NCBI RefSeq assembly: GCF_000150275.1
Contig: NW_002060947.1
Span: forward strand, 2,035,740-2,099,739
Direction: 5' to 3'
DNA from: Trichoplax adhaerens
Lineage: Eukaryota; Animalia; Placozoa
Length of the DNA: 64,000 bases
Under the pieces are notes generated by a model. It made no database searches. It was not told the DNA's origin and saw only the letters and a list, made by a program, of their open reading frames with translations. A program made the position numbers and the translations under genes. Positions 1,486 to 61,460 of this stretch are shown piece by piece (positions within the stretch are counted from its first letter, which is position 1; every line of letters begins with the position of its first letter).

Positions 1486-2196
1486 ACTGATGGTAATCCT
1501 TATTTAAAACGTCCTGAGCAACATGGCCCTGGACCTATCAGGACATTACAATTTGATCAATTTCGCGGGCCTGATCATTCCAAGCATGATCGACGACATA
1601 TGCCTTGCCATTTCACTACCGATCAATTTCAAGCTCAACTAGGTGCAACATTTAAAGATTCAGCTCTACATAACATGGTACATCATAGCCTCCTTGATCC
1701 TATGCGTAATGATGGCGCTTCCAATATGATTTCCATGCAAAACGACTCCCAACAATCGGATATCGAAAATGAGCGTTTGGGATTGGAATTGTTCGCTGAA
1801 AATTTCAAACAACGACGGACTAAACTGGGGGTAACACAAGCCGATGTAGGCGCTGCTTTAGGTAATTTAAAAATTGCTGGAGTCGGTTGCTTAAGTCAAT
1901 CAACTATTTGTCGCTTCGAATCGTTGACATTAAGTCATAACAATATGATGGCATTAAAACCAGTCTTGGCTGCATGGCTAGAGAAAGCAGAAGAAGTTTA
2001 TAAATCCAAGCAAATGAGCGGTAACTGCGACAATACTATTATACCTCAAAGAAGTGATAAAAAACGTAAAAGAACTTCTATCGCAGCTATGGAAAAGAGG
2101 GCATTAGAAGCTTATTTCGCCATTGAACCTCGACCATCCAGTGAAAAAATTGCCATCATTGCGGAAAAACTAGACTTACAAAAGAATGTTGTCCGT
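1486..2196 (+). CDS. POU4: POU class 4 (Brn3/acj6/unc-86) homeobox transcription factor, main exon; 5' exon not located and homeodomain helix 3 missing
   Basis: POU-specific domain LELFAENFKQRRTKLGVTQADVGAALGNLKIAGVGCLSQSTICRFESLTLSHNNMMALKPVLAAWLE and homeodomain DKKRKRTSIAAMEKRALEAYFAIEPRPSSEKIAIIAEKLDLQKNVVR are diagnostic of class IV. The frame stays open upstream of ATG 1600 to an acceptor ttag| at 1485/1486. Similarity stops after KNVVR (no VWFCNQRQK). Confidence 0.93.
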
Positions 2197-5100
2197 GAGA
2201 TGAATTTTTTTCTGGATTTATACCAGTATGAACTTTTCAGACTTTCTATCCTGTTCGTCTTAATNTAAGAATCTTCTCTAACGTAATCTATATTAAAATA
2301 ACGTGCTAGAATAATATATAATGTCAAGTACAAGGAAAAACTTTAGCTACTGCATGTATCTGTGAAAGAATAAGGGAATATTAGATTTGCTAGTTGTACA
2401 GCACTATTAATGATATCAATCAAATGCTGGGTATTGATTTGCGATAGTCCATTAGTATAATTGTATCGTAAAATAGATAATTAACGATCTAATGATATAT
2501 TAGACGACACATTCATTCTTCACTATGTTGTATTTTTTATTCTAGTTATGGTAAATACAAACATTTGTGAAGCTGGAAAAATAACTTTTAACATCTAATA
2601 AATCTTATCCGAAATTATTAAAATAAACAGTACTATGGTATTACATAAAATAAAAATAATCATTTGATTCGAACAAAATTAGGAAATATCTTTAAGCATC
2701 CGTCAGAAGATTACCCTTTCCGTTGAATATGATCCCTCCTTTACCTGAACTAGTAACATCAACTCAATCAAAATATCAATTCTCTTTAATTCAAATTAGT
2801 GCAGAGCTAACTAAATTTAATACTCGTCTGTTAGTTATCATTTATTACATCTAGTATTGCTGTTCCAAGAACATTATTTGTGGTATAGCTTATGGAATAC
2901 TGTAAATTTAGCACTTAAAGTAATAGAGGACCAAGTAGACAGTAATTTTTGCAATAATGTACAAGTATTTTATTTCAACGATTACATGAGGACCTCCATT
3001 CTCTGTTGTACATGAATATGACGAGTTTCTCCTTAAAAATATGGATCTAGTTTACAAAATATCCTAAAACAACGATAATTTACTATTTCAAGTAGCCTAA
3101 ATTCTTTTATAATAGTATGTGTTGTTACTCGTTAAACTATAGCTACTCTATCATTTCATCCCAATAAGCTTTTAGATTTTTCTAATCCAATTACTCTTTG
3201 CCTGCAGCACCAGGTTGTGATAATTTTAGCCTAAATTATTGATTTTTATAGACTTTATACAAATCTTGAAATTTTATTTCAGCTCTTGCATGTGTATTAC
3301 CAATCACGATCTCCAGTATCTTAATTTTTCAATAGTTAAGCTTGTTAATCAATTTCCGATAAATTTATTGCAGCTATTAGATTTTATAAAATTTCCAAAA
3401 CTGATTTTGAATCTCAACAAATATACTGTGCTTTAAAGCTCTGCCATCTTCATTTTTCGATACCTTTCACATAGGAATGATCACTTTTCTATGCTGATAC
3501 AATATTAAGTATTGCACTAACATTACTAGACGGTAAAATTTTATTGCTTTTTTCATTGCATTAATAGTTTCTTTACATCATGCATCTCTATGGTTAAGAA
3601 GTAATATAATTCAGCTAATCAAACATATAAAACCTGGTGACCTACATATTTGGAGTAATGATCCTGCAAGCTAATTTTATTTATTGTTTATGTTACTGTA
3701 TCGAAATCTAAATACTGATGGTATCACATAAGCTTAAATAATTAATTCGTAAAATTTGGAGATAATTTTATCCAGCTGTTTCATCATATTTATTCTCCGT
3801 TTAATAATCCCCAGAAAAAATGGAAAAACTACCATTTATTTGGGCATTAACCACTACTATTGCATTATAACGCAATAAAATTAATAGGTGTGTGAATCGC
3901 GATATACATGCGAAGGCTAACTTATCCTAAAGCTGATCGTTAATAAACTACATTTTTATCTTATCAAAAATGCATTTATTCGCCATCAAATTTTAATATG
4001 GCAACAAGGATCAGTCTAGTCGATGGCCTTTGAAAAATCCTCAGTAAAATTGTTTATGTATACTTATTAATACTCATTCCATTGTTATTCATCGTTTAAG
4101 TGCAAGAATTATTTCACTTTTATTTGGTAGAGATTCTATGCAATCGTTGCCCAATAGTAGAACACATTTTACTAAATGGCATTAAATAATTTTGCTTTTA
4201 ATTATAATTTATCCCTAGTTAGGTATGCTTACAGTGTTGAGCTTTCGTTTTTCTTAACCTTTACACTACCAGTATGTCTTGGTACAGACCACTGTCTAAG
4301 TTAATTGTCTTTAATACTTAAGCTAAGATTATCAAAAGGGTTATTTATGAGTCATTGCAACCACTTTTTTCTGTACAAATATCACCTCATAAGCTGGAAT
4401 AGACTGGCATCTCATTCAAGTGAGCAATATTTGCATGTTAAATTATAAAAAAGTTTCAATTTAATAGTTCTTAAAATCGATATTCGTCTTAAATCAGTTA
4501 CTTCTAGAATGAACGGCAGCTTTTATCCTTTTTTCGTTGATAAGATTGCTATTCGCCTTTCTAATGTGGTTATCCAAACAACAAATTAATATATTCGAAA
4601 CGAAAACTTACTCTAAGATCTATATTAACAGCGATACATCGGACATCTATTGTCGCAATGGCTACGGCTTAGTTTAATTTGAATAGGTAGAGATATTATA
4701 AAATAAAACCACATGAGAAATATTTTATATATGACATCGCTACAAATATTTATGTTAATAACGGGTATTTAAATTTACTGAGTTAAACCATGGCTAATTA
4801 ATTATACTTTATATACTATTAATTTTTAAGGTTATTCTCGTAACTTGATGGTTATATTTAATTGTTGCCCAGATATCCTAGGAGTAGATACGAAAATTGA
4901 AAAGCATGCAATGGCTCGACATTTATAGCATTGATGATTCGAGTGCTCTCATAACTGCTGTTGAGTAAACATTTAATTAAATTTATAATCCTTCTTTTGA
5001 TATCGTGCTACCATATTTTGATCCAGGTTTTTTCATTTTCTCAATCATTTCCAGTTTATTCTTAATTTTAATCCTTCCATTGAAATAAATTAGCGAAATC

Positions 5101-8100
5101 GTAAGTTCTGAGTAAATTTTACAAAACATTAGAAGATTTTTTATATAATTAATATTTAAAATCAATTTATAACCAATAATTTAAGTAATATTTGGTAGTA
5201 TGTTACTATTTTAATTTAGCTATTAAAATTCGTCGATGATTGAAACCAAATAATTTTGCTATCATTATGTAATATTATAAAGCTTGAAAATCATCCCATA
5301 ATTCCAAATATTTCCTGTTTGCATTGCTTTAAAGCACTAAGCATCAAACAAATATCGTTGCTATTGGATTAAAATTAAATGTAATTGAAATCTGGATTAC
5401 ATTTTTTATTTCTACTTATGACATTATACAAATAGGGTTGGTTATAGATGATATTTCAAATAATAATATAGGATACACTTCCTTTCTTCTGAAGACGATT
5501 CATAATTATTTTTAGATTACAATATATTGAATAGTGACACCTTAAGTCCTATAATTACTAGAGTATACGCGTATATATATACATACATAATCGGTCCATA
5601 TTATGTCTTCGCCAATTTCGTATGGTGTATTTTTAGTTGAGAAATTTCAAATTGTCTAGACAGATAAATGTTTGAATATTAAAATTCTAACAAGCTACGT
5701 GTCTGTCAGCAAATATTAATCTATCAACTGCTATAAAATATTATTCAGAGGTACTCTTTTCCCTAATATTACTCGTCTGTAATTCATAGAAAAGCTTTAT
5801 CCATAAACTATAACTTCACTTTTACTTCTTGTATTACCATCCAACACCTATTATCTTATGGTGTAGTTTTCAATTTTAATAATTAAGAATATGACTGTAG
5901 TAAATATATTGAAATTGAGTAGACTGACTATAAACAATAAAAGGTAATAACGCTTTACATTAAATTTTAATATGGTCAACATTGTCCGGGATCTGAACGT
6001 AATTTTTCAAAAATATTATATTGTATACGTACTTCACTTTATAGTATTGGCCATTGGACCTATCACACAACGAAAATAGCAATATATAAAAATAAGAAAA
6101 CTGATTACAACCTAAGAAGTATGGTAAAATTTGGGTTTTTTAAAATATTCGATATTCGATATGCCTTTTCGTAAGTTAAAAATGATCAGCAAAATCTAAC
6201 CGGATTAGATGACTAAAAACATGCTTTACAGCAGAATAGATATCCACATGATTCCCAGTAAGGTTAACTTAAGAATTGTCTTTACTTTGCACTAACGTCT
6301 TTATTTTTAAATTAAATCATTCTATACGCGAATTGGGCGATAATTAATTAGATATGTACAAAGCTTACTAGCCGGGTTATTTCTAATTGCGGCAAACGTC
6401 ACATTGTATCTTTTAACCATGAAGATTAGGCTACATTAAGATCTAATTTCAATTTTGACTATAATAGTAATTAACATATATCAAATTGTTTTCTTAGCTA
6501 TAGCTTAGCTTCAATATTATCTACATAAATTCTAATAAACGTTCCTAACTTCGTTATATTTAAGTGCATGAGGTTATATAAGATTTATTCGAATTTAGAA
6601 GCATTTAGTAATATCAACTGAGCTACAGTAGCCTTTTACTGTCCATTTTTGACAGTAAAGTTGTTGAAACTGTAGTATTAGACGTTTGATTGTATTAGGT
6701 GCATTAATAAAAAGCATAAGTACCGAAGCGGCTCTAGTTGTATAGATCTAATATGATTGTAGAATACTATCAATACTGCATTAAAATCATTTATTTAAGG
6801 ATTAGATATAACAATGTTATATAATATATAACCATCAAGTTATGATTATGATAGAATCTCATTTATTTTTAACTAATACTATTATTATTTAATGAAATTG
6901 GCAAATTCACAAATTTTACCTATATCTATAGCTTTAGTGTTGAATACTATTTCTGTACAGATGTAATACTATTTGAGCACTACCTATGCAGGCAGGAATT
7001 AGATGTAATGCAAGAGCGGATATACCATTCTATTACATCTATTTCTTATCGTTACTGTTTCATTTTTCTTATCATTTTTTTGTGGACTGAAAATGATGCT
7101 ATTGATAGCGAAAATCGCAATTTAGCGTCTATTTTGAGTAATGTTAGCAAATGTTAGCAATAGATTCACTAATTATGATAGAGCGGAGCATAAGTTGGCT
7201 GCAAAGTAAACTACTGTTTTACGTACGATTACCGGACATAAAGCCAGGCAAGGAAAAATTGTTGATGAAGATATTAAATTTGCCAGCTGTGCTAATAGAT
7301 GATTTTACGCTACCGATTGGCGATCATGTAGTCATGCTCCGTTTATTTTTTCTCCCTCCTTCATTTTGTTATTAGTTCATTTATCGGAAAAAATATTGTA
7401 TTATTTGTGCATGTGACATCGTCAACGATCAATGTCTGATAGATAAATATTGGTGAATTCTTATATCTCCACCAGTATGTTGATATGTATCAGATTAACC
7501 CACAAGATTAAAACAGAACAATAATAAAGATTAATCCATAATTGGATTGGTGATGAGCTGAAATTATTGTTGAGTCTTAATTGTTCTTCATGGATATTAC
7601 AGAAGTGCCATGTGTCTTGTCAATTTCCTACATCTTTTGTTCAATTATAACGGTATTATAATCTGTGTACCACCCACTTCGAATAGATAAAAAATATTTG
7701 ACATCATTTCTCAAATACATTTAGATTACTATTTTTCAACTAATCGGGTGTCTTAATCGTAGATCCTTTCATCAATCTGATAAATAAAGTACCAGACATT
7801 ATCATTTTCACCTGTTCGTTTAATAAATAATAAAAATTGGCCAAATACGAATTCTACAGCTACAACGGAGAGTCGAAAAGTGAAATTAATTTAAAAAATT
7901 AAGACTATTATTTCATTTTAGTATATAGAGTATTTCTAAATAGGAGAAACATTTATAACATTACTAACAGTTTAGCTAGATTGATATTTGTAAAACAAAT
8001 GAAACAATTGGAGTCCATATTCATCATATTAAGTACATATCTTAAACGATAACAACCAAAAGTGAGAACTTCAATATTGCTATATTAGAATGTACAATAT

Positions 8101-11100
8101 ACTACAATACGACTGCTATAAAAGCATAATTGTAGGTGATTTTATCTGCTCTAATTCTCCTTACTAATTCGAAAAAGTATCTGCAAGCTAAAAACTAACT
8201 ATGCGACGATACTCAATGAAATAATTTGAAAAGTAAACATAAGGTTTATGATATCTTTACCATGATATATTTCCTCTGCTCTTTCATCACTTATCAACAT
8301 TGACTTCAAACACATTAACTACATAAAAATTCGAATTATGATTGTAACGAATATGATCATCCTATTATCGAAATGATAAAGAAATCTTTTCGATATTCAT
8401 ATTACTCTTCAAATCGAAAGTAGTAGTGATCATGATGCACAGGTTACAACGATGCTAAAAGCCATTAGAATGCCATCTGCAGTAGTAAAAAGTTCAAACT
8501 ATCAACCGTCACAGTCAACTATAACATAAACACAAAATTAAAAAGGATGTAATTAATATCCGCTTCAAATCTATTTGCTAAATACTCTAGATAGAATAAA
8601 TAATCTTGTTCATAGATCGCTTTCAAGTAAAGCCAGTTAACTAGTACTGCGATTAGTATCTCCTTTATTACTCGTATAAAAAATTGATATTACTCAAATT
8701 GAAACTGATTCCCACTGACATTTTTGCTGTAATTATTGTTAATTTACTTCATGTCGATAAAAAATTTATTACCTTACTACTATCACCTACTTATTGTACT
8801 AGTAATACTGAATAATATTTCTTATTGCGATTTCTTTACAGCTAGATGTTCGAATTATTGCTTTATGGAAGCAATATTATCGATCTAAGAGACGTATTCT
8901 CTAAGTATTACATCGATATAGCAATTTCGACTTTGAAAGTTAAAGCTCTACCAAATTAGAGCTTACGTATTCTAATAACTATGTATATACAATAGTAAAA
9001 GGGCATATAAAATAAGATTAGTCTCTAATTAAGTTTATTTAATCGGCAGAATTGCTCTTCACGCTTTGAAAGCCAGCTCACGAATACATGAATGTAAGTT
9101 ATTCTTAAACGATTTAATTCCAACAATCATTAAATAATATAGCTATTTTTCATTTTCAGGTGAAGTCTAGGAAATTGCATGTAACCAAATAGAACTTAAA
9201 GTAAATCAAAAGCTTAGGTAGTGCTATGGCTGCTATCAAATTCAAGACACTTTTTGAGAGATCTAACTTTAGAGATTACAAATGCCAATTTACTAGAAGA
9301 TTATTAATTAAGTAGCCACACTTATATAGTTTTACCTTGTTCCTATGAAAAATTGATCAATTGCCATTAAAATTAATGTTATCATCAGAGTACTATTTGC
9401 TCTCATCCTTGTATATGATTAAAAATTGATCAAATTACTACAGGTTATGCAACTAATTAATCAGGCTATTCTGACATGTGTAACTTTAACGTAAAGATTA
9501 TGTAAAAGTTATCATTACATGAATTCAAGAATTACTTTTATCGTTGACAGACCTTTATTATTAGAGAGTAAAAGCATCATGTTACTGATGTTAATGCTTT
9601 CTGCGAGTTCATATTTTCAATATAAATATAACATCATAGTATGCTAGTAGAAGACTAAGCGAAGAAGTAATGTTATTTTGTCTAAGGATTAGAGAAATTA
9701 GAAGATAAAAAACAAAAATTTTGACCTAATCAAAATGGATTCAAAGAAAAATTTTAATATTATTCTTAAATCTCATTTTAAGAGTAAGTACTTTAAATGT
9801 TCAATAGCACGTATACTTGTTATATATCAATATTCATCAGTTAGACTGCTACCGTAGTGTACAACATATTTAAAATCCTGATCGGATACATACTAGGCTA
9901 ATTGGCTGTTTCAGCCCATCACAGCGTGTCTTTTTCTTAATTAACTTTTTGATATTCTTTATCTATCCCTTCTTGTAACTAACGATTTATGTTACAAGGA
10001 TCGTATAAATGCTTCTAACACAGTATCCTAGAGCCCACTTAAAAGTAATTTTGGTAGTTTGCTACAATTTTTAGTATGTATGTTCAACAAATGGAGATTC
10101 TAACTCGTATGAAAGCGTATTCACGTCTGATATTTACTCCTGGTCAGTTCAAATTCACTCTAATATTATCCTTTACACAAGTTGACTCTTTTATCCACTA
10201 CAGTAACGGCGAATGGCCTTATATTATCTTTTTAGTTATCGCTATAGCTAAAAAAAAACAGAAGAAAGTAATAGCCGCTGTTTTGTTGATTGCAATTGAA
10301 ATACCATATACGGTACAGAAGTAGTACAATTCAAAATAAGATGATCAACAATTTTCTTTCTCGATTAATTTAGGAATAGCTGTACTTTTCCCGGGCGTTG
10401 AACACGAAAATTTAGGACTGTTATTATGCTTTAGTTGAAAATTAAAGTAAAGGAAGCAATAGATATTGTGATGAAGCTAATTCTTAGGGTCCACAATAAG
10501 CTAGGCTGACTGGATTCATGAAACTAAACCGCAAGTGTATCTACTGTACATTACAACAAACAGCCAACAAGAATCCTCTATCTTCTGGATGCACTTGTTT
10601 TCAAACTCTAGCACTAGGCCGATTAAGTAGTGGTATAAATATCATTATCACGCTAATGCATGCATCTACGCTTTCATCCGTTAAGCACAGGAATTGAAAT
10701 TACTGTATCCCATCATTTTACGAGTAACTAATCATGTTCAAGCACACCAACATTGCATCTTACAGTAGGATATATTAGTATTTTCGATACTAATTAAGAA
10801 CTCAATTACAAAACTAAACTCAAGGCACTACATTAGCCATAGTTTTTCATTGTCCAGTTACACTTGAAATATAGTCTAAAGCTTGCTCTAAAATTGGTTC
10901 TCGTAGTCAATGATATTCACCTAGAATGATTTGGTGAGTGTTTTATTTTGTGCCAGACATCGATTTACGAGTAGATACTAAAATAAAAAATTTCTATTGT
11001 CGCCCTAAGCGATTATTCAGGAAACAATAGCCCTAGTTTTTGTCAATTAATTGTACTTGAAATGCAGAAAATGATGTATTTTAAAATAAGTTGCTGTAGT

Positions 11101-14100
11101 CAATAGTCTTCTTCAAGATCAATATGGCGACCGCGATGGTTTAGGTAAGAAATCGATTTGGAAGCTGAAATTCAGGAAAGTCATTATAGCTAAAATTATC
11201 GTGAAAGGAATGGCAACGGTTTTAACTTAGTCAGTAATAATTAATTATAAATTGTAGTTAAAGTACATTACATGACATTCTCCTGGACTAATCGGATTGT
11301 TTTATTTCATGCCAGGCATCTGTTTACATACTGGAATTGAGAATTATAAAAGTATAGCTAAGAAGTGCACATGGGGAATATATTAGTAGTAGTTTTTATT
11401 AACGAATTCCTAATGATTTATATCGCTATGTGATAGTATGCATTAAAATTAATCAGCGATATTCTATTAGAGTATTAATACAGTGTATAAATAGCTTTAA
11501 TTTACACTAGATATTCATCGCGGCAGATGTATAGAGATATTCCATTGCACAAAAGTTATGAGTTCACAATCTATCTGCAGCATGACGAGGGTGTAGGAAT
11601 TAAAGCAGATAATTAAGATAATACAGAAATTCCCGTACTTTCTAATACCCAAGAGAATATATTTAAAAATTTCACTTATAGAATCACAGAATGTCATGTT
11701 TAAACCACTCATTTGTCACCAATTTATTCCAATCTTGAAAATATAGCAACTGTACAGTATAGTCGATTTCTTACGATTCCGATCCACGACACTTTTTCAA
11801 AGCCGTAATATAAACGTGTAGTTAGCTATACATACATCCGCGCATAAATAATATTGTTGAAAATTGCTTTACTTACGAATTATATATCTGGTATATTATT
11901 TAAGCTGAAATCTACAGAATCCCATAATTTACGATGCGACATCGTTAATATAGTTAGATATACGTTATATTGGATAATCGTATCGTATCTAATGCCTTAA
12001 AAAAAGATAAAAACTCTCAGTGATATAGCTAAATGATCATGGTATCATATCCGGCTAAGTTATATAATTAACAACAAACGCATGATAGACAGATTATTAG
12101 AGAAGTTAGTGTTACTTAGATAGCTTAAGCAGGTGGATGAATATAGGGATATCATAATAAGTCAATTATGTATATTATATGCATTAGTAGAGTACAGCAA
12201 TGAGGAAATAAATCATGCAGTAAAAGTATCTTGACAAAGCCTCTTCGTTGGGTTACAATATCTACGATTTATTTTCGACATCAAAACTCAATCCCATAGC
12301 CTAGAATTACAATGTTTTATATAATATACCCATATTAATGGTTGATAGTCGATATGTGAAGTTACTTTAGCCCCGTCAGGCAAGATTTAAATGATTTAAG
12401 AGACCAAATAATGGCGATACACTCTATTATAACCGTCATTAATTAGTTTCATACTGCAAGCAATTGCATAAGATAGGTCTAAACTCTCTTTCAAAGCCAC
12501 AGAATTTTTATTGTTAATATTTTATCATTATGCTAAATGTAATACTTATGCGTCTTCTGTGTGCACTGGATTGTCACAAATTTGCTTTGTGATCAACTTT
12601 ACTGTCTACTAGACTACTTATTCCTTGCTCCACCTCAACTGGAGATCTGATGTGCAGTAGTACTGTATTATCTACTGTTACACAAGAATAAGACTGTTCT
12701 AAAAGACTAGAATGGTTTATTAGCAGAGTAACCGTGTGCCATTCATTATACTAAATAATAGCAAACTTTCGGACTGAGTTTTTGCTCGCCTCGCCCTTTT
12801 ATATCCTTCCAGGCAAATTACAGTGCAGATATAATGATTTTATTTTATAATTATTTCACTCTTATAAGATTTATATGATTAAATAACCGACAAAATGGAA
12901 GACAGAAATATCGCTTCAGCAAGTTGTGGTATACGAGTACTTTCTTATAACTAGCATACTCAAGGCAAGATTTATCTTTGATTTTACAAGATTCCATTTC
13001 ATTATACAATGATGACTGACGCTTCATAGATCGCTATTGCGCTTATAATTAATTTCATTAATGTTGATTAAAATAATTAATGACCATTTACTCATATAAG
13101 CAAAAATTAAATATTTGAGGTATTCAGAATGTGTGGCCGAGACAGTATACGTAGTTAAAGGGAATATGCGTTCTTATTTGAAAATGCAACTATATATTTC
13201 ATATCATTACCGATCTAAGCCTGTAAATCGTGCCGTAATAGGAATACTGATAATAAATCGAATTTCAGTTTAAAGTTCAGAAATAATTCACTATTTCTAC
13301 TACTTTACTGTAAATAAGACCAAGGTTTGAAATATGGCGTACTTAAGAGGTGATCACACAGATAATATTCCATTAGCCTGGTAACGATGATTATATATAT
13401 ATTTAAATTATTCTATTTCCAAACGAATATTATAATAAGATGTCAACACAATTACCATCTGATGATAGAATCAAGCAGAACTGAAAGAATCATAGATTAA
13501 TGTTTAACTATCCATATTATTCTATATTCTTACCTCACCGTATATTTAACTTTTACTCTCTTCATTTATTACATTATTGCCTTTTTAATCTTTCATACTC
13601 ATTATTAGTGTTGTTTCGCATTAAATTTTATTCTGTACAATAAAGAACTAGCGACTGAAGATTTTCGGATAGCCATCTTTTTAATTTTTAAATTTAGCTT
13701 ACATGAGGCAATTAGCAGTACGTATGTATAATTTCAAGCCGCGTGTAGATATTTTAATTTCAAGAAATGTACGACAACTTGACTGTGGTATTGGTATCCT
13801 TTAATGGCAATGTAATAAGAAATTCATACCTATGAATAGTTTTTCCTACAGCCTTGATATTTGTACTTTAATTAGATTAATACTCGTATTTCCAAAAATT
13901 TTGCAAAATTGCTGAACTGTGTTTACATATTATTAATCTGTTCCAGTAAAATACAAGTTAAATCTTCTCCAGCAATTTTACTTAACAGTTTATTTCTATT
14001 ACTTGATTTTTCAGAAATTTATGAGCTAATCTTAAATTGTCATCTATTATAACATAGTTCATGTATTTGAGGAAAAAATCATTCTACTTTAGTACCTTAT

Positions 14101-16249
14101 TAATTATTGAACCTATCAATTCCAATTTAGTATGTATATCAATTCGTTCATTAATCTTATGAATTTTTGATTCTCCCTATAGATAAAAAATCAGACTGAG
14201 ATTCAGTGATTAATAGACATACGAAATATTCAAAGAAAGCGGAATATCGTTACACTGAATACTGCATATTGGAAAATGTATTGCCAGATTGCTATGACTT
14301 CTATAAGCTTTAACTGCAAATTGAGGTTTGATTGACTTTATTTGCTTATAAAATCATCCAAGTACTTGTAGTTATATTAATTTGATCTGTTGGCTATAAG
14401 ATTTATAGCATTGACAAGAAATACTGATATTAACATATTTTATTAATGAGCAATATCTCATTTTATTTTCGATTAATTCAATTCGATCATCAAAATTTTA
14501 GCCTATTAATCAATGATAGGATTTATCCTACATATTTTATTAGTGAAATATTAGCTCAATCAGTGATCAAAGTAACACTCCAATTCATCTGCTATTCACA
14601 TATTGTTGGCGTATACTGAGAACTTTTTTCTCTCATTAAATTTGATAGGAGTACAGTCTACGTGTAATTAAGATCATTCAGGGATCAGTTTAATCTCATT
14701 TTGAGGGTAAGAAAAAGTAAATACTTCATAGCGATGGGCAAGAGTAAGCTCGTAAGCTAAAAGAAATCTATTCCCCCTATAGATTAACTTTCTTTAATAT
14801 TTTTAGTTACTATAACGACAACTTTCGTCGAATGATGTTTTTAACATTAAAAAATTTGCTTTAATAATAACAAAGGATAAATTGGGATAATAACTTTAAC
14901 GATAAGCAATCTTATTTATTCCTAATAAGCCATTAATGATAATAATAACGCCAAATGTTACCACAGGTATTAGAAATGATTTAAATACTTTAATGACATC
15001 ATAAAAATATAAACAAATAGCTACATCAGCAATTTATTATGGCTAAAAGGAGAAAATTAATATCATACTATTGTTAATCTAAATTTAATCGGCAAATAAA
15101 TAATGTATCGAATCCATCTGCTAATTTCCCCTTACCATTTGTTAGAAATGTCTTATTATACTCGTCAACAAAATCAATTTACAGCATTGAATGGGTACTG
15201 TATTAGCTGTTACTTTACAAGTCGAATTTACTAGCTACGGCTTTATTTTAGTGTCTTCGAATACATTACTAAAATAATACTTTAATCTATCGAATAACAT
15301 CTATTAGTTCTTTCCATTAAACATAATTCATACCAGTAATTACTCTGCCATTATTTACTCACAATCAAACGTGAAGCTAGAGTTTTGAATTAAAGAAAAA
15401 ATTGAATAGCTAATTTTAGAATCCTTTGGATGTTATTATTACGAACAAATTTAAACTAATATTGAAATGAAGTTATGAAAAAGTGAAATTGAGCGGTAGA
15501 ATATTTATCCATAAGGACAATTTAGGTGTAGATAATTTTGGAGTTTTATAGTTACAGGCTATTCTACCTTGATTCTTAGAGAGATTAATAGATATATCAT
15601 TTATGTGCTAAATACTTTTCATGGTTGAAAGTTATTTAACCGATTTACAAATTATGATAAGCGTATTGCCATTGTAGATAGATTGTATGCATGTTGGTAT
15701 AATCGTTAAAAACAGACTACGAATCGCAAGAACTTCCCTTCTAGGGCATAAAAACCTATTTGAACGAACTTAAGACTAATCTTATAATTTTAGATCTATA
15801 AATATAAAATTAATTGCCTTTTCTTATACCACGAAACTGTTACTTGAATTATGTCTCTGCAATTACTAATGGACACGACAATAAATTTAAATCCACATGT
15901 TTTCACCCTTTTGATCACGAGCAAGAGCCACTAAAAGCTCTAGTTCTAGTTCATGAAAGCAATTAGTAAATCGATCTACATGATTTCATTTATCTTAATC
16001 TCGATGTTGTACAGAAAAATGGTCACGAAATCACACTAAGCAAATGAACTAATTAATTACAACAGTAAAATCTGAATTGAGTTAGTGTGCACTATCATCT
16101 TCATTAATTTGCATTTAATTTAAAAGATACAGAAATAGCACCTGGTGTAACGCTATAAAATTTGGGCTAATAATAGAAATAGAGGCTTCTTTCTTCGTTT
16201 TTCGGCACTATTTTAAGATTTTTCAATAATTCACTTTGATTGCTGGTCC

Positions 16250-17160
16250 TGTGGATGTTCTTTAGATTCATTATCAACATCCGATTTAATATTACAAACT
16301 TCATCTCACGAATTAACTTTAAATCTAGTTTCATTTGAGCCTGAATGAAATGATGTAACTTTAACAAGCCTTCTCAACGATTGCATTTATCTATAGTACT
16401 GCAGATATTATTGAATTTACTGTCAACATCCGATTCCATCTTTTAAAATTGAATGCAACAATTGTCTTTACTACTATTTTCAGTTAATTACGATTAAGGG
16501 CTATTTTTAAACAAGCATTCTCGATGATTGAGCTTGTAACTGATAGATATCGTGTAAGTTCATTGTTAATATCCGATTCAATATTGTAAAATTATTTACA
16601 GGCTTGTCTTTATTCTTGTTTTTTTAATAATATAATTTTGACTAAGTGTTATTGCTGACAAGCTTTCTCTAAGACCCACTGCTATCTATATTGGACAATA
16701 TTATTTAATTTATTGTTAATACGCGAAACAATGCTATAGAATCTCGAACTAAAGCTTAATTTCATTCTTATTTTTTAATAATCAGATCTAAAAACAGCCT
16801 CTAACGAGCTTTATCCATAATTAAGTTCTATATATAGTAGGTGATATTTGATTCATTGATTTATCCAATAGTACCAAAACAATGGGTTAAAATAAGCATC
16901 GTAAGCTTGATTGAATTCCTATTTCCATTTAATATCTGTATCTTGTATGCAACTCCTAAATAAGCTTCTTATTGATTGAAATTCAGTAAAAAAAAGTACT
17001 ATTCCCATTCATAGTCAATACTTGAAACAATATTATATAATTAGAACTGAAAGCTTGACTTTAGTCTTGAAATTTAAGTACAATAAGTATTATTCTAATT
17101 CATATTCAATAGCTGAAACAATATTATACAATTAAAACTGAAAGCTTGATTTTATTCCTA
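16250..17160. repeat. Degenerate tandem array: ~145-bp units (about 16250-16900) followed by two ~91-bp units (about 17010-17160)
   Basis: Recurring 'tgtcaacatccgatt / tgttaatatccgattcaatattg / tgttaatacgcgaaacaat' near 16270, 16420, 16562, 16711. 'tcaata.ctgaaacaatattata.aatta.aactgaaagcttga' occurs near 17015 and 17106. Confidence 0.6.
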
Positions 17161-18574
17161 ATTTTATAGCAGTACTTATTTCTATGCATCGCCTTCAAAG
17201 CAAATCTTTGTAGTGATTGAGTTATTTATGTACCGTAATAACATTTGATCTATTGTCAAATGTTATATACGTTATAATATTTTGACTCGTATATGCAGAT
17301 ATTTCATCTATGAAGTTAAAAACTAATGCAATAAAGGAATGCTTGACCAATTAAAAATGTGTGTATGATTCATTTGCTGCCTGAAAAACTCTCACTCGCA
17401 ATTAGATGGAACATCGATTCTGCTAACTTTATGAATATAGAATTCCTATTTAACATATTCCTTTACTAACTGTAGGCAAACTTATTCCATGCACGTAGGT
17501 AACCAATTTAGGAGTAGCGTTCAGGTCTAACTCGTTAAAAGAGAATTGGGTCATTTTAAAATAGTTCTGACATTAGACTCATCTATAAGGGGTTTGAGAT
17601 GATGCTGGCCTAACCTGTGGCTTTAAATTCTAAAATCAGGGGTCTAGGTATTGCAAATATTCAGGTAGCACCTCAAATTTACAAATCAATTCTTAGTACT
17701 GCTTTCGCTGTATGCTTTCTGAAATAAATGAATTACAACTATAATTGAGGCTAGAATAAAGCATACTGTATGTAACTTAAAGATCATACAAAATAAAGCC
17801 AGCCAGTCAGATATGGATAGGCTAATTTATCATAAGTGTAATTATTTCTGTATGATCCCACTAATCACTAGTAACTACTCTCTAAAGGGATCATTTATTT
17901 TACGACATCAATAATATTAGCCGTTGTTCTCCGTTCATATTTGAATACATTAATTTTATGCAAACCAGATACAAATTACAGTGGCATGTATACTTGTATA
18001 GTACCTTCCTGAAGATATGTACATATCTACATTTAGATCTCAATATAAAGTCGAAACAATCACAATAAGGATGATTACATCCTAACATAATAGTTACTCT
18101 TTAAAGCATAGACACTTAACAAATTCTTATACGGTAATATTTGCAGACATAGCTGCGATTTTACGCAAGATTTAAACTAGATAAACTTACATGCTAAGGT
18201 AATTGTTCAATTATAACTGAATAATCTTATTTAATTTGTAGAAATTGTACGATAGGCCATCAACAATATAATTATACATAAAAGTGGCCACAATTATCTG
18301 TATATTATACTGACTTATCAAACTGAGAGATAAGCGTTTTCTGATTATATTTCAAACATATTGATTCAATAGAGCTTGAAATCAGCTGTGTGTGCCTTTT
18401 AATGTCATTAATCAACTCGAACTAAATATTAACCAATAGGATCAAATCTTATAGCTAAGGTAGAAAAATTTCATTTACAAAACCAATTCATAAATAATAA
18501 TCTGTATAATATTGAAAATAGTAAATTAAATAGATGCTTGTAGTTACGATAATTTCGATACATTTGCTGTTGCT

Positions 18575-20599
18575 TCATTGTGTTGAATCTCCAGGAAATA
18601 AGCATCGCACTACTCCACAAGATGTTGAGCTATTATTTTCATATTTCGAACTCTGAGCAATAGGTGATTCTTTTACTTTGTCATCGTTAAGTAATAAATT
18701 CTATCAAGTGCAAAAAATATTTTCTATATTATAATCTGTAAATTAATGGAATATTAAGCATAGAAGGTATCTACGATAGGTTAAAAACATTCTTCTAACA
18801 TCACCTTTGCGATATCATCGCTTTCTGAATTTTTATCTGATTCTAATTCCTTTACATAATTACTTGTCAATTCTTCTATGTACTTATCACTACGCATTAA
18901 TGCTTTCTTCAGTTGCTCAATTTCTCTTTCGTAACAACTAATTTTAGACTGCATAGCAGCCATAACATATCTTCCATGCCTGCATAAATACAATCGAGAT
19001 TAAATAGCCAAAGCAACTGCTACTAGTCGACGACAGTTGATTGAATTACATCTTTTTTGTATATTTATAGCGAACAAATGTAAATACTATGCTGCACCTG
19101 TAAGTTTTGGTAGGTGATGCTCGCTCATATCTCAAACGATTAATTTCCTCCTTAAGTTTTTCATTTTCTTCGCGAAATTTCTTATTAGACTAATGAAGCA
19201 CGAGTTAGACATCAAAATAACAATTGATTAATAGATTCTCATTAACTGTTACAGAAAAAATTTACTTATTAACTGGTTATTACGAATACATAAAGGATTC
19301 TGCGCTGTAATTTATTGTAACCATATTAAAAATTTTTAAACCTTTGCAGTATTACCTCATTAATTTGTTTCATTTCACTCAAAAGATCATTACAACTATT
19401 TGTAGCAACCATTAATTCATCAGCAATACGCCAAATTGTTTTGGGGCTATCATAGCCCTCCTGCATTCGCATCTTTTTAGAGGGTATTTCTTCATCATGG
19501 CAATGATCTGCATGTTGACAATTACAATATTTGCGTTTCTTTAAGTTATTTATTGTCTCCACTAGTTTGATATTTTCCTCTCGAAAGCTTTTCAGCATTA
19601 CACGTAGCTGGTCGATTTCTTCCTAGCGAGTTTAAAATTAAAGGGAAAATTATAGTTAATAAATAAATATGGTTAATATTATTCCTGAGAACGTTTTCTG
19701 CCAAAAGAAACCGATCCAGTTCGCAACATGTGATTTACAAAGCATAATGCCATAATGATAATTCTTGGAAAGGCTTGATGTACGAGTATATCCTACTTCA
19801 GTATCAAATTATCTACTCCAACCAGCAAACTGTAACCTGTGAGTCACGCCATAAAAGTTTACATACTAACAAACTCACCTCGTATTCTTTACGTATTATT
19901 TCGAATCGAACTTTACGTAATTCTTGAGTTAACTCAAAGTCTTTGTCATCTTTATTCGACGAATTATCATCGGATATTCCTAGACAATTCAATATAATAT
20001 GATTGGAAAAAATGATCAACGCTGATGTCTACACGATATAAATGCAAATAATAGATAAGTAATAGCTATGACTTGCTTTACAGGTGGAAAAGTAGCCATA
20101 AATAATAATAATTCATATTGCAGAAAGAATATAACATAGCGATATCAACTCACCGGACGCGAGAATAATACCTACCTAAAATTGGTTTGCAAGGACTTTC
20201 GGGAGAGATGGCAGTCCGACACGCTGGACAACAATTATGGTATTGAAGCCAAGCTTCAATACACCGTGAGCAAAATACATGATGATTTGCACATATTACA
20301 GGTTCCTTTACCTGTAAAACAACAGCAATTACTACTGGAACAGTATTTATGCAATCCACACTTTTATCATGAATTCTACGCATACAGTATATCAATGTAT
20401 AACACGATCACAATCTAATTCCATTTGAATTTTATATCAATGACTACTATACCATGGTTATATATTGCATTGAACATAATAAAAGATTGGGATAAAATGT
20501 ATGTAGCCATTATAACATTATCCTTACCCTGTCTAAACAGATATGGCATGACATGGGCAAAGTAAAGCGTAACTTGACTTGAGAGCTTTCACTGGCCAT
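18575..20599 (-). CDS. OBI1: ORC ubiquitin ligase 1 (RNF219), RING plus coiled coil, 7 exons, ~322 aa
   Basis: Exons 20599-20528, 20311-20176, 19979-19879, 19622-19356, 19189-19098, 18979-18805, 18700-18575, all GT-AG with consistent phase. They give MASESSQVKLRFTLPMSCHICLDR|VKEPVICANHHVFCSRCIEAWLQYHNCCPACR and HGRYVMAAMQSKISCYEREIEQLKKALMRSDKYIEEL, which match the OBI1 RING and coiled-coil motifs. An alternative in-frame ATG lies at 20623 (MESNANIN-M). The last exon is the least certain. Confidence 0.9.
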
Positions 20600-22026
20600 A
20601 TTGATATTGGCATTGCTTTCCATTGATGTTTTCCGTTGTTGACGAATGATGCTGCACTGCGTTCGGGTTATTACAGTAGACTACTGTACAGTACATCACT
20701 GCACTGTACACTGTAATGGAGTACTGTACACTGTGGGTCATTCACGCGTTGCAGCTGAAGTCTTGTTGAGATGACTCGCAACGGTATTCAATTCGTTGAT
20801 AGTAACTGGTGTATCCAGTCATCATGTTTACTACATATCTTGTTGACATCGTTGCGAGAAATGAACTATTTATCCCTCTTGAAAGTCTCAAGAAGCGATA
20901 ATATTTTGGTGAATGTTGATCGATCTAAGTCTGTAGAGGTATTGATATTGATATTGGCATAGCTTTCCATCGATGTTTTCCGTTGTTGACGAATGATGCT
21001 GCACTACGTTCGGGTTATTACAGTACTGTACAGTAGACTACAGTACATCACTGCACTGTACACTGTAATGGAGTACTGTACACTGTGGGTCATTCACGCG
21101 TTGCAGCTGAAGTCTTGTTGAGATGACTCGCAACGGTATTCAATTCGTTGATAGTAACTGGTGTATCCAGTCATCATGTTTACTACATATCTTGTTGACA
21201 TCGTTGCGAGAAATGAACTGTTTATCCCTCTTGGAAGTCTCAAGAAGCGACAATATATTGGTGAATATTGATCGATCTAAGTCTGTAGAGGTATTGATAT
21301 TGATATTGGCATTGCTTTCCATCGATGTTTTCCGTTGTTAACGAATGATGCTGCACTGTGTTGACAGAGTTACTACAGTACAGCACGTACTGTACTGTAC
21401 AGTGCATAAGTGCACCGCACATTGTACAGTAGTACTGTACACTGTGGGCCATTCACGCGTTTTACAGTACAGTACTGTATAGTTGACGTCCTGTGAGATG
21501 ACTCGCAACGGTATTCAATTCGTTGATAGTAACTGGTGTATTCAGCCATCATATTTACTACATATCTTGTTAACATCGTTGCGAGAAAAGAACTGTTTAT
21601 CCCTCTTGGAAGTCTCAAGAAGCGGCAATATATGGGTGAATGTTGATCGATCTAAGTCTGTAGACGTATTGATATTGATATTGGCATTGCTTTCCATTGA
21701 TGTTTTCCGTTGTTGACGAATGATGCTGCACTGCGTTGACAGAGTTACTACAGTACAGCAAGTACAGTACAGTGCATGAGTGCACTGCACATTGTACTGT
21801 ACAGTAGTACTGTACACTGTGGGTCATTCACGCGTTGTAGTTGACGTCTTGTGAGATGACTCAATGGTATTCAATTCGTTGATAGTAACTGGTGTATTCA
21901 GTCATCATGTTTACTACATATCTTGTTGACATCGTTGCGAGAAATGAACTATTTATCCCTCTTGGAAGTCTCAAGAAGCGACAATATATTTGTGAATATT
22001 GATCGATCTAGGTCTGTAGAGGTATT
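20598..22026. repeat. Four-copy tandem duplication (~350-375 bp) of the OBI1 upstream region and first codons
   Basis: 'atattgatattggca.tgctttcc' starts at about 20598, 20945, 21297 and 21672. The ORF track shows near-identical translations at 20771, 21123 and 21483. Confidence 0.95.
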
Positions 22027-22465: not shown

Positions 22466-25144
22466 ATGATATCGCAACTGTTTACATTCAGTCGTCTTAG
22501 TTTAAAGGAGAAGCTATTTGGTCCACATAGTTACACTAAGTTTTACACACCAATTGTATCAAAATTACGTGGATTATCAACGATCTCCCTTGAATCGTTA
22601 AAATATCGTTTTATTTGGCATGGTGGAGTTGAAATTGATTTACAACGAGTCGATAATCACCTTCTCAAGCCGGCTAATTTCGATTCAGCTATAGCAGGTT
22701 CGCCCTCGAATTAGGCTTTACTCATGACTACTAACAACCGGTAACATCATAGTCAAAATGCCGTTATAACTAACATGTACCAATGTACTGTACGTTAAAT
22801 AAATTAAATCAATTACTGAATCATACAGTATACAACGTATTCGTATAATTATGGCTGTACACCAATCCTAGCATATGATAACTCAATTTTATGAATCTAG
22901 CATAAATTTTGAGTATAGTCAGTGTAACAACTGTATCGTTCTATCTATTACACGCTACTACAGCTTCCAATTACATTGAATTTTAAAAGGCAGAACTTGA
23001 GAAATTCTTAATACAGTAGATAAATAATACCAAAATCCAATCACAGACTTGAACCTAATTCATTAGTGGTGTGGTTACTTGACTAGACATCATATGAATG
23101 TAATCGACTTTGAGCTTGAAAGTAGTCTACTATAGCTCTCCGTTTTGGTATCAAAATCGATATTCAACGTCAATTTACTCTACTTTCAGTTATATCATCA
23201 ATATTGACTATAAACATGCGTACTCACTCACTACAGAGGCAGTGAAAGAATGCAGAAATCTAGGCAAAAGAACCGTCTGGTTGAAGGTACCAATACAATC
23301 TTGCAATTTAATAGCTGTTGCTGCTAAGCATGGCTTTCAGTTTCATCATGCAAAAGGAGACACTGCTATGATGAATTGTTGGCTTCCTGATGATATTGAG
23401 TGCAAAGTACCACTATTTGGAACTCATAAAGTTGGTGTCTGCGGTAAGACTACAATCGTTGCACTAATCATGATTGAGTAAATTAACTTCTTTTTCCGTT
23501 AATATTGTCGACGAATTGACTGTTGTGCCTGTTGCATAATATAAACTACAACAGTTTGACCTAGCTGAACAATCATCTTCCCAATCATGACCTAATGAAT
23601 GTAATCCAATTTGTAGAATGTCGAATAGTTCAAGTGTTAGCCTCTTCAATAATTAATTAATTAATTAATTATACGCGCAACCAGTGCTTTATAGCTCTAG
23701 CTCTGCATTTACGTTACTGTACTGTACTATGCAGTACAATCATGATAATTCGACCTGGCTGAGCAATGATCGTCTAACGCGCAACTTGATAATGCAACTA
23801 AACTAATGTAAGGTCAAATAGTCGGGTAGTTAACCTTTTCAATAATTATAAATTAATTGCCATACAACTTCAACTATGAAATTCACTGTGATGTGCTAAC
23901 AGTTGCAATCAAAAACTAAACAACAAAATAATTATCCCGTCGGTAGCAATAATTTTGTACGCACCTGACGACGTTATCATACAGGTGGACAGACATTAAC
24001 GCTCTTCCGTTGTTGTTTGCACCATGTATATATATGACACCGCAATACAGTACCACTTAACGTAACATAATCATTTTATTAAAAGGGGAATAGATTTCCG
24101 CTGTAGGAGTAAATTGAAAAGTTTGGTACAATATCTCTGTCAGCAAAGTGACACGTTATGGTGCCAGTAGTCTAGTACACTTTATCAGTAATGTATATAT
24201 ATAAAAATCTTAAGATTAACTTTCTTTATTCCATTTTAGGAGTTGTAGTAGACGAAAGTACTAAAAAGGTATTGGCTATTCAAGAGAGAATCATGAAGGT
24301 TTGTCAGTCATAAAAATAATAATCCATATATTAGAAATATAGTACAATCAAGCTGGATTGCAACTATATTTATCATTTATACACATATTTCAGATAAGAA
24401 AATGGAAATTCCCTGGCGGCCACGCAGATCACGGAGAAGACTTTCGTAAGTATTAAAAATCACTAATCTTTAAGTGATAGATACTGTAAAACCAGAATAT
24501 CTAAATTAATAATCCAATACGTCATATATAATGTACTTATCTTAATTGATAATACAAGTTTACTTTTTCAGACTATTGTACTCCAACCTATAAATACTGC
24601 TATACGTCAGCATTATACTACTTTACTAGGATTATATTTGCTGGCTACTATTAGTGAAATACAAACACAATACTTTTCGTTATTTAGGAGAAACAGCAAT
24701 CAGAGAAGTTTATGAAGAGACTGGCATTCAAGCAGGTACAGTAATTTAATAGCTAAATGACTATAATTATCTATCGGTTGATATGCGTATTCAATATATT
24801 AATTTGCTACTCACAGAAGAACTTTTATGCCAGAATATAGATCAGTTTTAGCTTTTCGGCATCAGCATCATTTGCCATATTTTTTCGATCAATCTGATAT
24901 ATATGTGATTTGCCGATTGTCTCCTATCACATACGATATAAACATATGCACGGACGAATTATCTCACTGTGAATGGCTTCCTCTGTCAGAGTTGGCTTCC
25001 GATGAAGACGCTAATCCGTTAACAAAGTGCATATCACGATTGATCTTAAGTGGATTCGAAAAAGGATTTGATCATATTGATATAACTTTTGATGAAATGC
25101 CATCTATCTATGAAGGGATAACTTATAAGCTTTACCACAGATAG
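22466..25144 (+). CDS. NUDT6: Nudix hydrolase 6, 6 exons
   Basis: Exons 22466-22697, 23237-23443, 24240-24298, 24394-24445, 24688-24735, 24834-25144. The splice rebuilds the Nudix box [28 protein letters not shown] and the NUDT6-type N-domain (VWLKVPI...HGFQFHHA...WLP...HKVGVCG). The basic N-terminus resembles a mitochondrial presequence. Confidence 0.9.
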
Positions 25145-26393: not shown

Positions 26394-27830
26394 TCATTTA
26401 TGGAATAATGGCTGCACGGCTCGGATAAACGAAGTATTGAATACATCTTCAGAGAATCTTGCTGCAGCAGATTCTCGAGCTCTTAGCCTGAGATCCATTC
26501 GTTCTTTGGTGGACATTTCAAATATTTCTTTCATTGCCGTTGCATACTGTTCTTCGTTTTCTGCTAATAAACCTGTTGGCTGGCCTTGCCAGTCTTTTAC
26601 AATGTCCATTTTTGGACCACCACTATTATGAGCTAAAGTGACAGCTCCAGCTGCCATGCATTCAACTACACCGATACCGAAATGTTCATTCCACATTGTG
26701 TGCAATCCAATAGTTGCATTTGATAGACGTTCCTGTAACTTTTCAAATGATACGTTTAACTCAAATTTTACGTAATCAACAATTTTCAATTCATCGCACA
26801 ACACTTTTAATTTATTGACACGAGCTAAATCTTCATCATTCCGACAGCTCCCGATTAAAATTAATCCATAACGCTTCTTTTCTTCTTGGGATAAAGCTTG
26901 TAAAAATCTATGAAAGGATCTAATTTGCAACGGGTGATCTTTCTCAGGGCGAAATTGAGCTATAGATACAATCGTCAATTGTTGTTTATCATTGACTTCA
27001 GGAAATTCTGTAATTGGAAATTGTTGAAAAGTTTTTGTATCACATGGCGGATAAACTACAGAGGTTGACAAAGGCTTTTTCCATAGTGCTAGTATGTGAT
27101 TTTTTGTCCAGCTTGAATTGACCATAATTACATGCGCACTGCTACCAACTAAGCCATACAATAAGGCAAAGATGTAATAATATAATATTTTGATACTACT
27201 TAATAATTTACTGTTGGATATAAATGAGGCATTATTAAACCCAGGCCTTCTGCTACTGACCACACTTAACATGTCAACACTTATTGTTGGATAATGGACA
27301 TAACAGCCGATACTGCAGCACCCAATGTAGCGAAACAACGGTAAAGTAAAAGCATAGCCCATGCTATCGATATAGATATCGGGAACACAAAGACGTAAAG
27401 CTTCCCAGCCAAGTAATATAGAACCTAGCGATTGCCCTAATAATGTGAAAAACGGATAAGATGATGCTTCTACTAACTGTCGCTTTCGTAGAAACTTAAA
27501 CTCTACATCTCTTTTCAAGTTAATATTAAAACGTTGCTTGACTTTACGTAGAATATCTTGGGGTTTTGCATCGCAATCTCCGCTGTATACGACACAATGA
27601 GCGCCTGGATATACCTCCTGTATAGCCCGAATAGCGCACCACAATACACGTTCACCGCCACCTCCAGCATTACAGTAAGGATGAAAGAATCCAACGATTA
27701 CTTTGGCGTCAATATTATTCTTTAATTGATTTCTCTTCCTAGTTGCCCATCTACGAAGGTATAGTACTAGCATGAGTAGGACTGCCAACACAGCCAATAT
27801 TATGGTCCAACTCATTAATATCACGTCCAT
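26394..27830 (-). CDS. ALG11: GDP-Man:Man3GlcNAc2-PP-Dol alpha-1,2-mannosyltransferase (GT4), single coding exon, 478 aa
   Basis: N-terminal TM helix, then FFHPYCNAGGGGERVLW, YVHYPTIS, QFRPEKDH, HTMWNEHFGIGVVECMAAG and HNSGGPKMDIV. Confidence 0.97.
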   Translation of the reverse strand: MDVILMSWTIILAVLAVLLMLVLYLRRWATRKRNQLKNNIDAKVIVGFFHPYCNAGGGGERVLWCAIRAIQEVYPGAHCVVYSGDCDAKPQDILRKVKQRFNINLKRDVEFKFLRKRQLVEASSYPFFTLLGQSLGSILLGWEALRLCVPDIYIDSMGYAFTLPLFRYIGCCSIGCYVHYPTISVDMLSVVSSRRPGFNNASFISNSKLLSSIKILYYYIFALLYGLVGSSAHVIMVNSSWTKNHILALWKKPLSTSVVYPPCDTKTFQQFPITEFPEVNDKQQLTIVSIAQFRPEKDHPLQIRSFHRFLQALSQEEKKRYGLILIGSCRNDEDLARVNKLKVLCDELKIVDYVKFELNVSFEKLQERLSNATIGLHTMWNEHFGIGVVECMAAGAVTLAHNSGGPKMDIVKDWQGQPTGLLAENEEQYATAMKEIFEMSTKERMDLRLRARESAAARFSEDVFNTSFIRAVQPLFHK

Positions 27831-61151: not shown

Positions 61152-61460
61152 CTAATATCTAGGGAGAAAAACTTTACCATTGCTACATAACAAAGGACCA
61201 ATTCTTGCTTGACCATTGATAACTGCTTGACCTTCAATAATTTTCACAGGTTGGACCTTAACTAATCGATGAACTGTATGAATCATACCATTAATTGTTG
61301 GAGTATTTTTATGGACGACAGTTTTATTGATCTTATTTAATCCCAATGCCTTTAACGTTCTTTTCTCCCAATATGGCCGACCAATACCACTTCGTATCTG
61401 TGTAACCGCATGTAATTTGGAAGCAACTTGAGCACTTTTCGACATTGTTGAAAGTATCAT
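61152..61460 (-). CDS. MRPL30: Mitochondrial ribosomal protein uL30m, single coding exon
   Basis: KLHAVTQIRSGIGRPYWEKRTLKALGL...VVHKNTPTINGMIHTVHRLVKVQP matches the animal MRPL30 core. Confidence 0.92.
   Translation of the reverse strand: MILSTMSKSAQVASKLHAVTQIRSGIGRPYWEKRTLKALGLNKINKTVVHKNTPTINGMIHTVHRLVKVQPVKIIEGQAVINGQARIGPLLCSNGKVFLPRY

Follow-up and report, generated by a model that had tools for sequence, protein, structure and literature searches.

A POU4 exon and an OBI1/RNF219 gene as neighbors in Trichoplax adhaerens, and their linkage in other animals

The two genes at the locus

The window considered here is a 64,000-nucleotide stretch of the genome of the placozoan Trichoplax adhaerens (G000:C1410:2035740-2099739). 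It is taken from a scaffold of 8.57 Mb within an assembly of 105.6 Mb in 1414 scaffolds, and the G+C content is around 30%. The first part of the window harbors a gene for a POU4 (Brn3-class) protein and, convergent with it, an ortholog of OBI1, also called RNF219. In animals ranging from cnidarians to mammals, POU4 is a conserved selector of sensory and neuronal cell types. OBI1 is described as an ORC ubiquitin ligase and as a cofactor of CCR4-NOT (PMC6547688, PMC8660800), and in mammals a long C-terminal region of the protein binds CCR4-NOT. An earlier note on this DNA had singled out the two genes as immediate neighbors and had proposed that they represent a very old pair, which is also found in human and which would predate the bilaterians.

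The POU4 gene is represented in the window by its large 3' coding exon at 1486-2196 on the plus strand, which is open throughout and translates without stops. The exon encodes a linker-rich N-terminal part, a POU-specific domain (Pfam PF00157, Pou, 6.8e-28, profile positions 6-72 of 72) and positions 1-45 of a homeodomain, the latter giving a partial match (Pfam Homeodomain, 3.4e-08, profile positions 1-45 of 57). Its AG acceptor is at 1484-1485, and a contig from a relative (L007, see below) shows homology from 1483 onward. A word search with the exon retrieved 1165 proteins at E <= 1e-10, with POU4 proteins as its best matches, and among the best 120 of these 1165 the names given by the source are POU4F, Brn-3, inhibitory POU or unspecific, with no name from another POU class. 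The class-IV assignment, which goes by sequence matches, also draws on the POU4 protein of a coral, which has 77% identity to the window exon versus 51% to the other POU gene of this genome. On these matches, the stretch 1486-2196 (+) is confirmed as a class-IV POU exon. The other POU gene, the sole one in the genome besides POU4, is complete and of the POU3 type, with VWFCNRRQKEKR as its helix 3. It lies at G000:C1410:3998322-3998750 (L001), on the same scaffold as POU4 but 1.96 Mb off.

The nearest protein to the exon (P0001) shares 95% amino-acid identity with it and comes from a 3.2-kb metagenome contig (L007), the DNA of which is 85% identical to the window over 1483-2197. When the exon is compared with the contiguous open frame of this relative, the ratio of nonsynonymous to synonymous substitution rates (dN/dS) is 0.02, with a dS of 1.3. 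So low a ratio indicates strong purifying selection on the exon, which argues that the gene is functional. The 5' exons of POU4 were not found in the 21.5 kb upstream, either by comparison with the L007 contig or by a motif scan for the POU-IV box, which gave no match in that stretch.

The OBI1 gene lies on the opposite strand, where seven exons with GT-AG borders can be read from 20599 down to 18575, the last of them tentatively. The exons were searched singly. Exon 1 (20528-20599) starts with an ATG at 20599, carries the first two cysteines of a RING finger (…LPMSCHICLDR), ends at a GT donor at 20527-20526 and matches residues 13-27 of an OBI1-like protein from the coral Acropora, P0272 (BLASTP, 5e-05). 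Most of the C3HC4 RING is encoded by exon 2 (20176-20311), which matches the Pfam families zf-RING_2, zf-C3HC4_2 and zf-C3HC4 as well as OBI1/RNF219 proteins. Exon 3 (19879-19979) aligns with residues 88-102 of P0272 (BLASTP, 3e-05), and exon 4 (19356-19622), with 89 codons between AG/GT borders, encodes a poorly conserved coiled coil or linker with weak matches to residues 103-124. The coiled coil continues in exon 5 (19098-19189), which matches residues 185-205 (BLASTP, 0.004), and in exon 6 (18805-18979). The latter holds a conserved coiled-coil motif (…AAMQSKISCYEREIEQLKKALMRSDKYIEEL…) and matches both residues 218-253 of P0272 (BLASTP, 1e-13) and residues 218-274 of the OBI1-like protein of Ptychodera (BLASTP, 9e-13). 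The tentative last exon (18575-18700), which has 41 codons and a TGA at 18577-18575, is proposed from its acceptor and reading frame, and has no family match.

The family assignment was pursued with a 45-residue query from the RING exon in an exhaustive HMMER search of a set of 1.84 billion proteins. The best single-stretch matches score 55-64 bits and, one multi-RING protein aside, are aligned at residues 25-68 of proteins that are mostly 450-850 residues in length. Among the other RING fingers of the Protein Data Bank, the highest score is 37 bits. Ten of the matches were looked up. Eight belong to clusters with names that are generic or that refer to 'ORC ubiquitin ligase 1' / 'RING finger protein 219', and these are drawn from amphibians, Ptychodera, Acropora and Gigantopelta; the remaining two are a Saccoglossus protein under a different name and an unnamed protein. 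Exons 1, 3, 5 and 6 are collinear with the Acropora protein at the residues given above, and the coiled-coil motif QSK..YERE…L..AL..SD..IE.L is present some 200 residues from the N-terminus, collinear with the RING. In the reverse direction, a search of the genome with residues 1-260 of P0272 found the OBI1 exons best, at 63.4 and 34.9 bits, with the next RING at 34.6 bits, and exon 6 is single-copy in the genome. Pfam alone sees a generic RING in this gene, a word search with the RING exon yielded no candidate owing to a limit on length, and a protein-atlas search with exon 6 was uninformative, as it returned only coiled-coil look-alikes. Judged by these matches and by the order of its exons, the gene at 20599-18575 (-) is an OBI1/RNF219 ortholog.

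The OBI1 locus is compact: it covers about 2 kb, and its introns measure roughly 120-260 bases. Its protein is probably short, with the model at about 330 residues and the full-length relatives among the matches at about 335 to 1136, and with the last exon tentative the C-terminal extent of the model is uncertain. Human OBI1, in contrast, is long, covering around 45 kb and encoding 726 residues. Abutting the start codon of the Trichoplax gene, Tandem Repeats Finder detected a tandem repeat at 20598-22026, with a 352-base unit in four copies and 88% matches.

POU4 (+) and OBI1 (-) are thus convergent, as had been described in the earlier note, with their 3' ends about 16.4 kb apart. Between them lies an interval of about 16.3 kb (2266-18574), with a G+C content of 28-32%, in which scans for tRNAs and Rfam families found nothing and 13 open frames of at least 50 residues gave no Pfam match. 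With these scans, the statement that the two genes are immediate neighbors with no recognizable gene between them has held up; as far as the sequence can be read, small-exon or noncoding genes may still lie in the interval. The surroundings of POU4 amount to some 40 kb without other recognizable genes. The rest of the window has recognizable coding sequence every few kb. The closest recognizable genes upstream of POU4 are three tandem heavy-metal P-type ATPases that end about 22.7 kb before the start of the window. We regard the interval as a candidate POU4 regulatory region. A repeat search of the interval found tandem units of about 91 bases at 16976-17157, where two copies are 82% alike. 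Diverged copies of the unit can be followed by eye down to about 16200, placing the array (16200-17160) at 1.4-2.4 kb from the OBI1 stop codon.

Linkage of POU4 and OBI1 in other animals

Linkage of POU4 and OBI1 is also seen in a number of other animals. For human and Xenopus the linkage is drawn from papers, and for the other species it is taken from genomic coordinates; loci were fetched as the queried gene with 10-kb flanks, the queried gene being turned to the plus strand. In the cnidarian Nematostella vectensis (DS469522.1), POU4 is found at 1,069,388-1,069,858 and OBI1 at 1,122,549-1,127,238, about 53 kb apart. The two hemichordates give very similar distances. In Ptychodera flava (CM083786.1), OBI1 at 21,209,285-21,232,104 and POU4 at 21,276,218-21,277,504 are separated by 44 kb, and in Glandiceps talaboti (OZ203272.1), OBI1 at 17,013,085-17,035,984 and POU4 at 17,080,531-17,081,781 are separated by 44.5 kb. 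In all three genomes, the 10 kb on either side of POU4 are devoid of other called genes, and 24-33 kb between the POU4 and OBI1 flanks fall outside the fetched sequence. The head-to-head neighbor of OBI1 in these species (SBF_like or Alg6_Alg8, see below) might be situated between the two. Look-ups of OBI1 in Acropora millepora and of POU4 in Montipora gave no usable genomic position.

The human locus on chr13q31 has the same orthologs as direct neighbors. A distance of 55.4 kb separates the POU4F1 start site from the OBI1 promoter, which is on the upstream side. An element at this promoter, which GeneHancer lists as an enhancer of POU4F1, gains acetylation of histone H3 lysine 27 (H3K27ac) on inhibition of HDAC2 (PMC8778714). 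This report fits both of the statements that the earlier note had made about human, namely that POU4F1 and OBI1 are adjacent and that they are co-directional. A single conserved REST site has both genes within 100 kb of it, in Xenopus as well as in human (PMC4430910).

The probability that two given genes fall within a distance d of each other by chance is about 2d/G, which comes to around 3e-4 for 16.4 kb in 105.6 Mb, and chance adjacency is ruled out by this argument. Given so low a value and a linkage that is repeated in four phyla, we conclude that the arrangement reflects common descent, as an independent origin is not credible. A POU4-OBI1 linkage that predates the split between placozoans, cnidarians and bilaterians is supported by the gene orders compared here. 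The proposal of a very old, prebilaterian pair has stood as regards linkage, which extends to Nematostella, Ptychodera, Glandiceps, human and Xenopus, with immediate adjacency established for Trichoplax and vertebrates. The earlier note had also allowed that the pair might be unlinked in all intermediate lineages, and it is linked in a cnidarian and in two hemichordates.

The flank of OBI1 on its other side has a history of its own. In four bilaterians, a gene of the SBF_like family (PF13593, an SLC10A7-type transporter) is head-to-head with OBI1 at about 0.3-0.4 kb from its start. These loci are from Lottia (L037, 803-9623), Branchiostoma lanceolatum (L013, 1-9694), Ptychodera (L008, 1-9684) and Glandiceps (L015, 1-9686), and the arrangement looks like a conserved bidirectional pair. 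In Nematostella, Alg6_Alg8 takes the head-to-head place of SBF_like beside OBI1. As a neighbor of OBI1 in Trichoplax, SBF_like is ruled out, as the gene is located on scaffold C1411. In human, SLC10A7 is presumably beside POU4F2 on chr4, with OBI1 beside POU4F1 on chr13. The old Nematostella OBI1 model (P0314, a 'predicted protein' with no Pfam match) is without the RING exons, which are found (L011, 8991-9310) 0.7-1 kb upstream of the annotated start, with the neighboring Alg6_Alg8 model ending about 130 bases away.

Retention of the pair

As to why the two genes have stayed together, we lean toward the view that the linkage is ancestral and has been retained by cis-regulatory constraint. According to this model, POU4 control elements would fill the interval up to, or into, OBI1, such that a chromosome break between the two genes would harm POU4 expression and be selected against. 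OBI1 would then have been kept as a bystander, marking the point where the POU4 landscape meets its first unrelated gene. In every genome where the POU4 locus was seen, at least 10 kb on either side of POU4 are free of genes, and these surroundings, taken together with the human enhancer annotation, fit the model of a regulatory block. The hint of POU4 control elements in or beyond OBI1 comes from the human GeneHancer element.

A number of observations weigh against this view. The first of these concerns the side on which OBI1 is found. The Nematostella gene, BRN3, is on the plus strand of chr10, its direction agreeing with that of scaffold_16 (Zimmermann et al. 2023, supplementary table), and this strand together with the coordinates places OBI1 on the 3' side of POU4, which matches the Trichoplax order. 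The human OBI1 gene, however, is 5' of POU4F1 and is transcribed towards it, giving a tandem arrangement, whereas the Trichoplax genes are convergent. Secondly, OBI1 is abutted by other genes in the mollusc Lottia and the nemertean Tubulanus, with no POU sequence within 10 kb. An Arf-like gene follows 0.7 kb after OBI1 in Lottia, and in Tubulanus OBI1 is found between a receptor gene and a lamin gene. The immediate adjacency of POU4 and OBI1 is not kept in these two animals, and the constraint, if any, is consequently not universal. Thirdly, the Trichoplax OBI1 gene, at about 2 kb and with small introns, has little room for internal enhancers, and the noncoding DNA of the sole relative (L007) does not align to the window. 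Finally, placozoans, anthozoans, hemichordates and vertebrates all rearrange slowly, and some neutral retention is expected.

Neutral retention is indeed the main alternative. It holds that an ancestral pair has survived through slow rearrangement and a short interval, with no POU4 elements tied to OBI1. The change in side and orientation between the non-bilaterians and human, the tiny OBI1 introns of Trichoplax and the interruption or loss of the pair in two protostomes fit this explanation about equally well, for part of the tree, and all of the linked lineages are conservative in the synteny literature (Irimia et al. 2012, PMC3514665). Neutral retention is less easily squared with a linkage that has been kept at 16-55 kb across a prebilaterian divergence, with the gene-free flanks of POU4, or with the POU4F1-assigned enhancer at the human OBI1 promoter. 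Moreover, at least 378 pairs at the root of the eumetazoans have been credited to cis-regulatory constraint (PMC3514665). We consider neutral retention possible but rather unlikely as the full explanation, and prefer retention by cis-regulatory constraint.

Pairs of a regulator and an unrelated neighbor form a known class, and POU4-OBI1 is one further case, which may already be tabulated. The at least 378 conserved pairs reported for the eumetazoan root (Irimia et al. 2012) include Otx-Ehbp1, which is found 'from placozoans to humans' (PMC3514665). Isl-Scaper is a further conserved ancestral microsyntenic pair of that study. The cause proposed for these pairs is the same as that put forward here for POU4-OBI1, with enhancers of the factor lying in or beyond the neighboring gene. 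However, the bystander enhancers of Otx-Ehbp1 and Isl-Scaper have been tested in zebrafish, whereas their POU4-OBI1 counterpart is a proposal from gene order. There is also a likeness to genomic regulatory blocks, in that a POU-homeobox target gene sits in gene-poor DNA next to a gene with an unrelated cellular function. Such blocks are defined by the conserved noncoding elements that span them, while POU4-OBI1 is likened to them by its gene arrangement.

In our literature search, which had the supplementary pair lists of the main surveys outside its scope, no synteny paper was found that treats POU4F1 together with RNF219/OBI1, and the searched papers held no mention of RNF219 in connection with microsynteny or invertebrates. 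The main text of Irimia et al., a survey of about 600 pairs, names neither POU4 nor RNF219 (PMC3514665). The POU4-OBI1 pair is also unnamed in the supplements of Robert 2022 and Zimmermann 2023.

It is a tentative and, in our estimation, doubtful proposition that POU4-OBI1 constitutes a genomic regulatory block older than the split between placozoans, cnidarians and bilaterians, and one not singled out before. Were it true, the POU4 control landscape would have become fixed beside OBI1 more than 600 million years ago and would persist in an animal without neurons. Together with the SBF_like-OBI1 pair of a mollusc, amphioxus and hemichordates, it would also make up a three-gene ancestral bilaterian block. 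To judge from the human maps, this block would presumably have been divided when the vertebrate genome duplications gave rise to paralogous regions. POU4-OBI1 leaves the understanding of the class of microsyntenic pairs unchanged. The linkage narrows the search for POU4 control elements to a small, defined piece of DNA, of 16 kb in Trichoplax and about 50 kb in Nematostella, and any elements there could be set side by side for an animal that lacks neurons and animals that possess them.

The break in POU4 and the surroundings of the pair

The POU4 exon does not reach the end of the homeodomain. Homology to L007 ends at 2197, and the window departs from this relative after that base. It is followed by a nonhomologous tail of 67 bases and a single N (2198-2265). 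This N, to which the earlier note had drawn attention, is indeed present at 2265, 68 bases past the break; it is the only N in 284 kb, and is flanked by unbroken sequence of at least 122 kb on one side and at least 197 kb on the other. In L007, the open frame continues past the break for 17 more codons (VWFCNQRQKQKRMKFAQ) and then reaches a stop, with no intron at this point. When the 130 bases after the break were compared with the expected coding continuation, the score was 21, against a shuffled mean of 19.4. A garbled copy of the coding end at 2198-2330 is ruled out, as the tail is no better than shuffled sequence, and within the 284 kb the tail is not a repeat.

The part of the homeodomain that is missing includes helix 3, which is present in the 95%-identical relative, P0001. 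The motif WF.N.[RK] is absent from all frames of the window and of the 20 kb upstream. A degenerate pattern covering all codons for WFCNQRQK, run over the whole assembly, has the POU3-type gene as its sole match and revealed no POU4-type helix 3. When the coral POU4 protein was searched against the genome, the window aligned only as far as coral residue 145 of 162, and helix 3 was not found. We read the tail as a contig end with poor or foreign sequence, and the N as a gap that hides the last 17 codons, which encode the recognition helix, together with the 3' untranslated region. The true gene would read from …NVVR directly into VWFCNQRQKQKR, with …NVVR continuing as VWFCNQRQKQKRMKF and a stop, followed by a 3' untranslated region that would be missing from the assembly. 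The truncation of POU4 at 2198-2265 is accordingly read as an assembly gap and not as biology, and the concern over the N expressed in the earlier note appears justified, in that a real gap seems to have removed the end of POU4. The loss of homeodomain helix 3 in a widely used assembly means that gene models and homeobox surveys carry a defective POU4.

It is much less likely that POU4 is genuinely truncated in the sequenced strain, or has acquired a new intron there, the sequence after 2197 being real. The GTGAGA at 2195 (C|GTGAGA, 2194/2195) does resemble a donor, and a lone N might be an ambiguous base call as opposed to a gap. Yet neither the degenerate pattern nor the protein search disclosed an exon coding for WFCNQRQK in the assembly, and the 95%-identical relative is without an intron at the break. 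The dN/dS of 0.02 speaks for long constraint, and a protein without helix 3 would be useless for homeodomain binding. Furthermore, the only N in 284 kb sits 68 bases from the break. We judge true truncation or a new intron to be very improbable, and retain the assembly gap as the explanation.

A scaffolding artifact, by which the N would join contigs that are non-adjacent or misoriented, has a slighter chance still. At the N, homology does break off abruptly and coding sequence is lacking, and sequence is certainly missing there. A mis-join is nevertheless unlikely, as POU4 and OBI1 are also linked in a cnidarian, in two hemichordates and in vertebrates, and the odds of a false join placing the two genes within 16 kb of each other are about 3 in 10,000. 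Unbroken blocks as long as those on the two sides of the N (at least 122 kb and at least 197 kb) are also hard to misplace or flip.

The genes farther from the pair are of various kinds. The ATPase trio upstream of the window (L033-L036) extends from about -54 kb to -22.7 kb relative to the window start, with all three genes on the plus strand; they are of the copper type and have HMA, E1-E2_ATPase and HAD domains. Beyond OBI1 are found recognizable coding pieces of a Nudix_hydro type at 23110-23481 (+), a single-exon ALG11 at 26394-27830 (-), a PAN3 pseudokinase at 36935-37231 (+), PPP5 at 44863-45126 (-) and a ribosomal L30 of the mitochondrial type at 61152-61460 (-). Human ATP7B, ALG11, PAN3, POU4F1 and OBI1 are all located on chr13, and this stretch of the Trichoplax genome may reflect an old linkage group.

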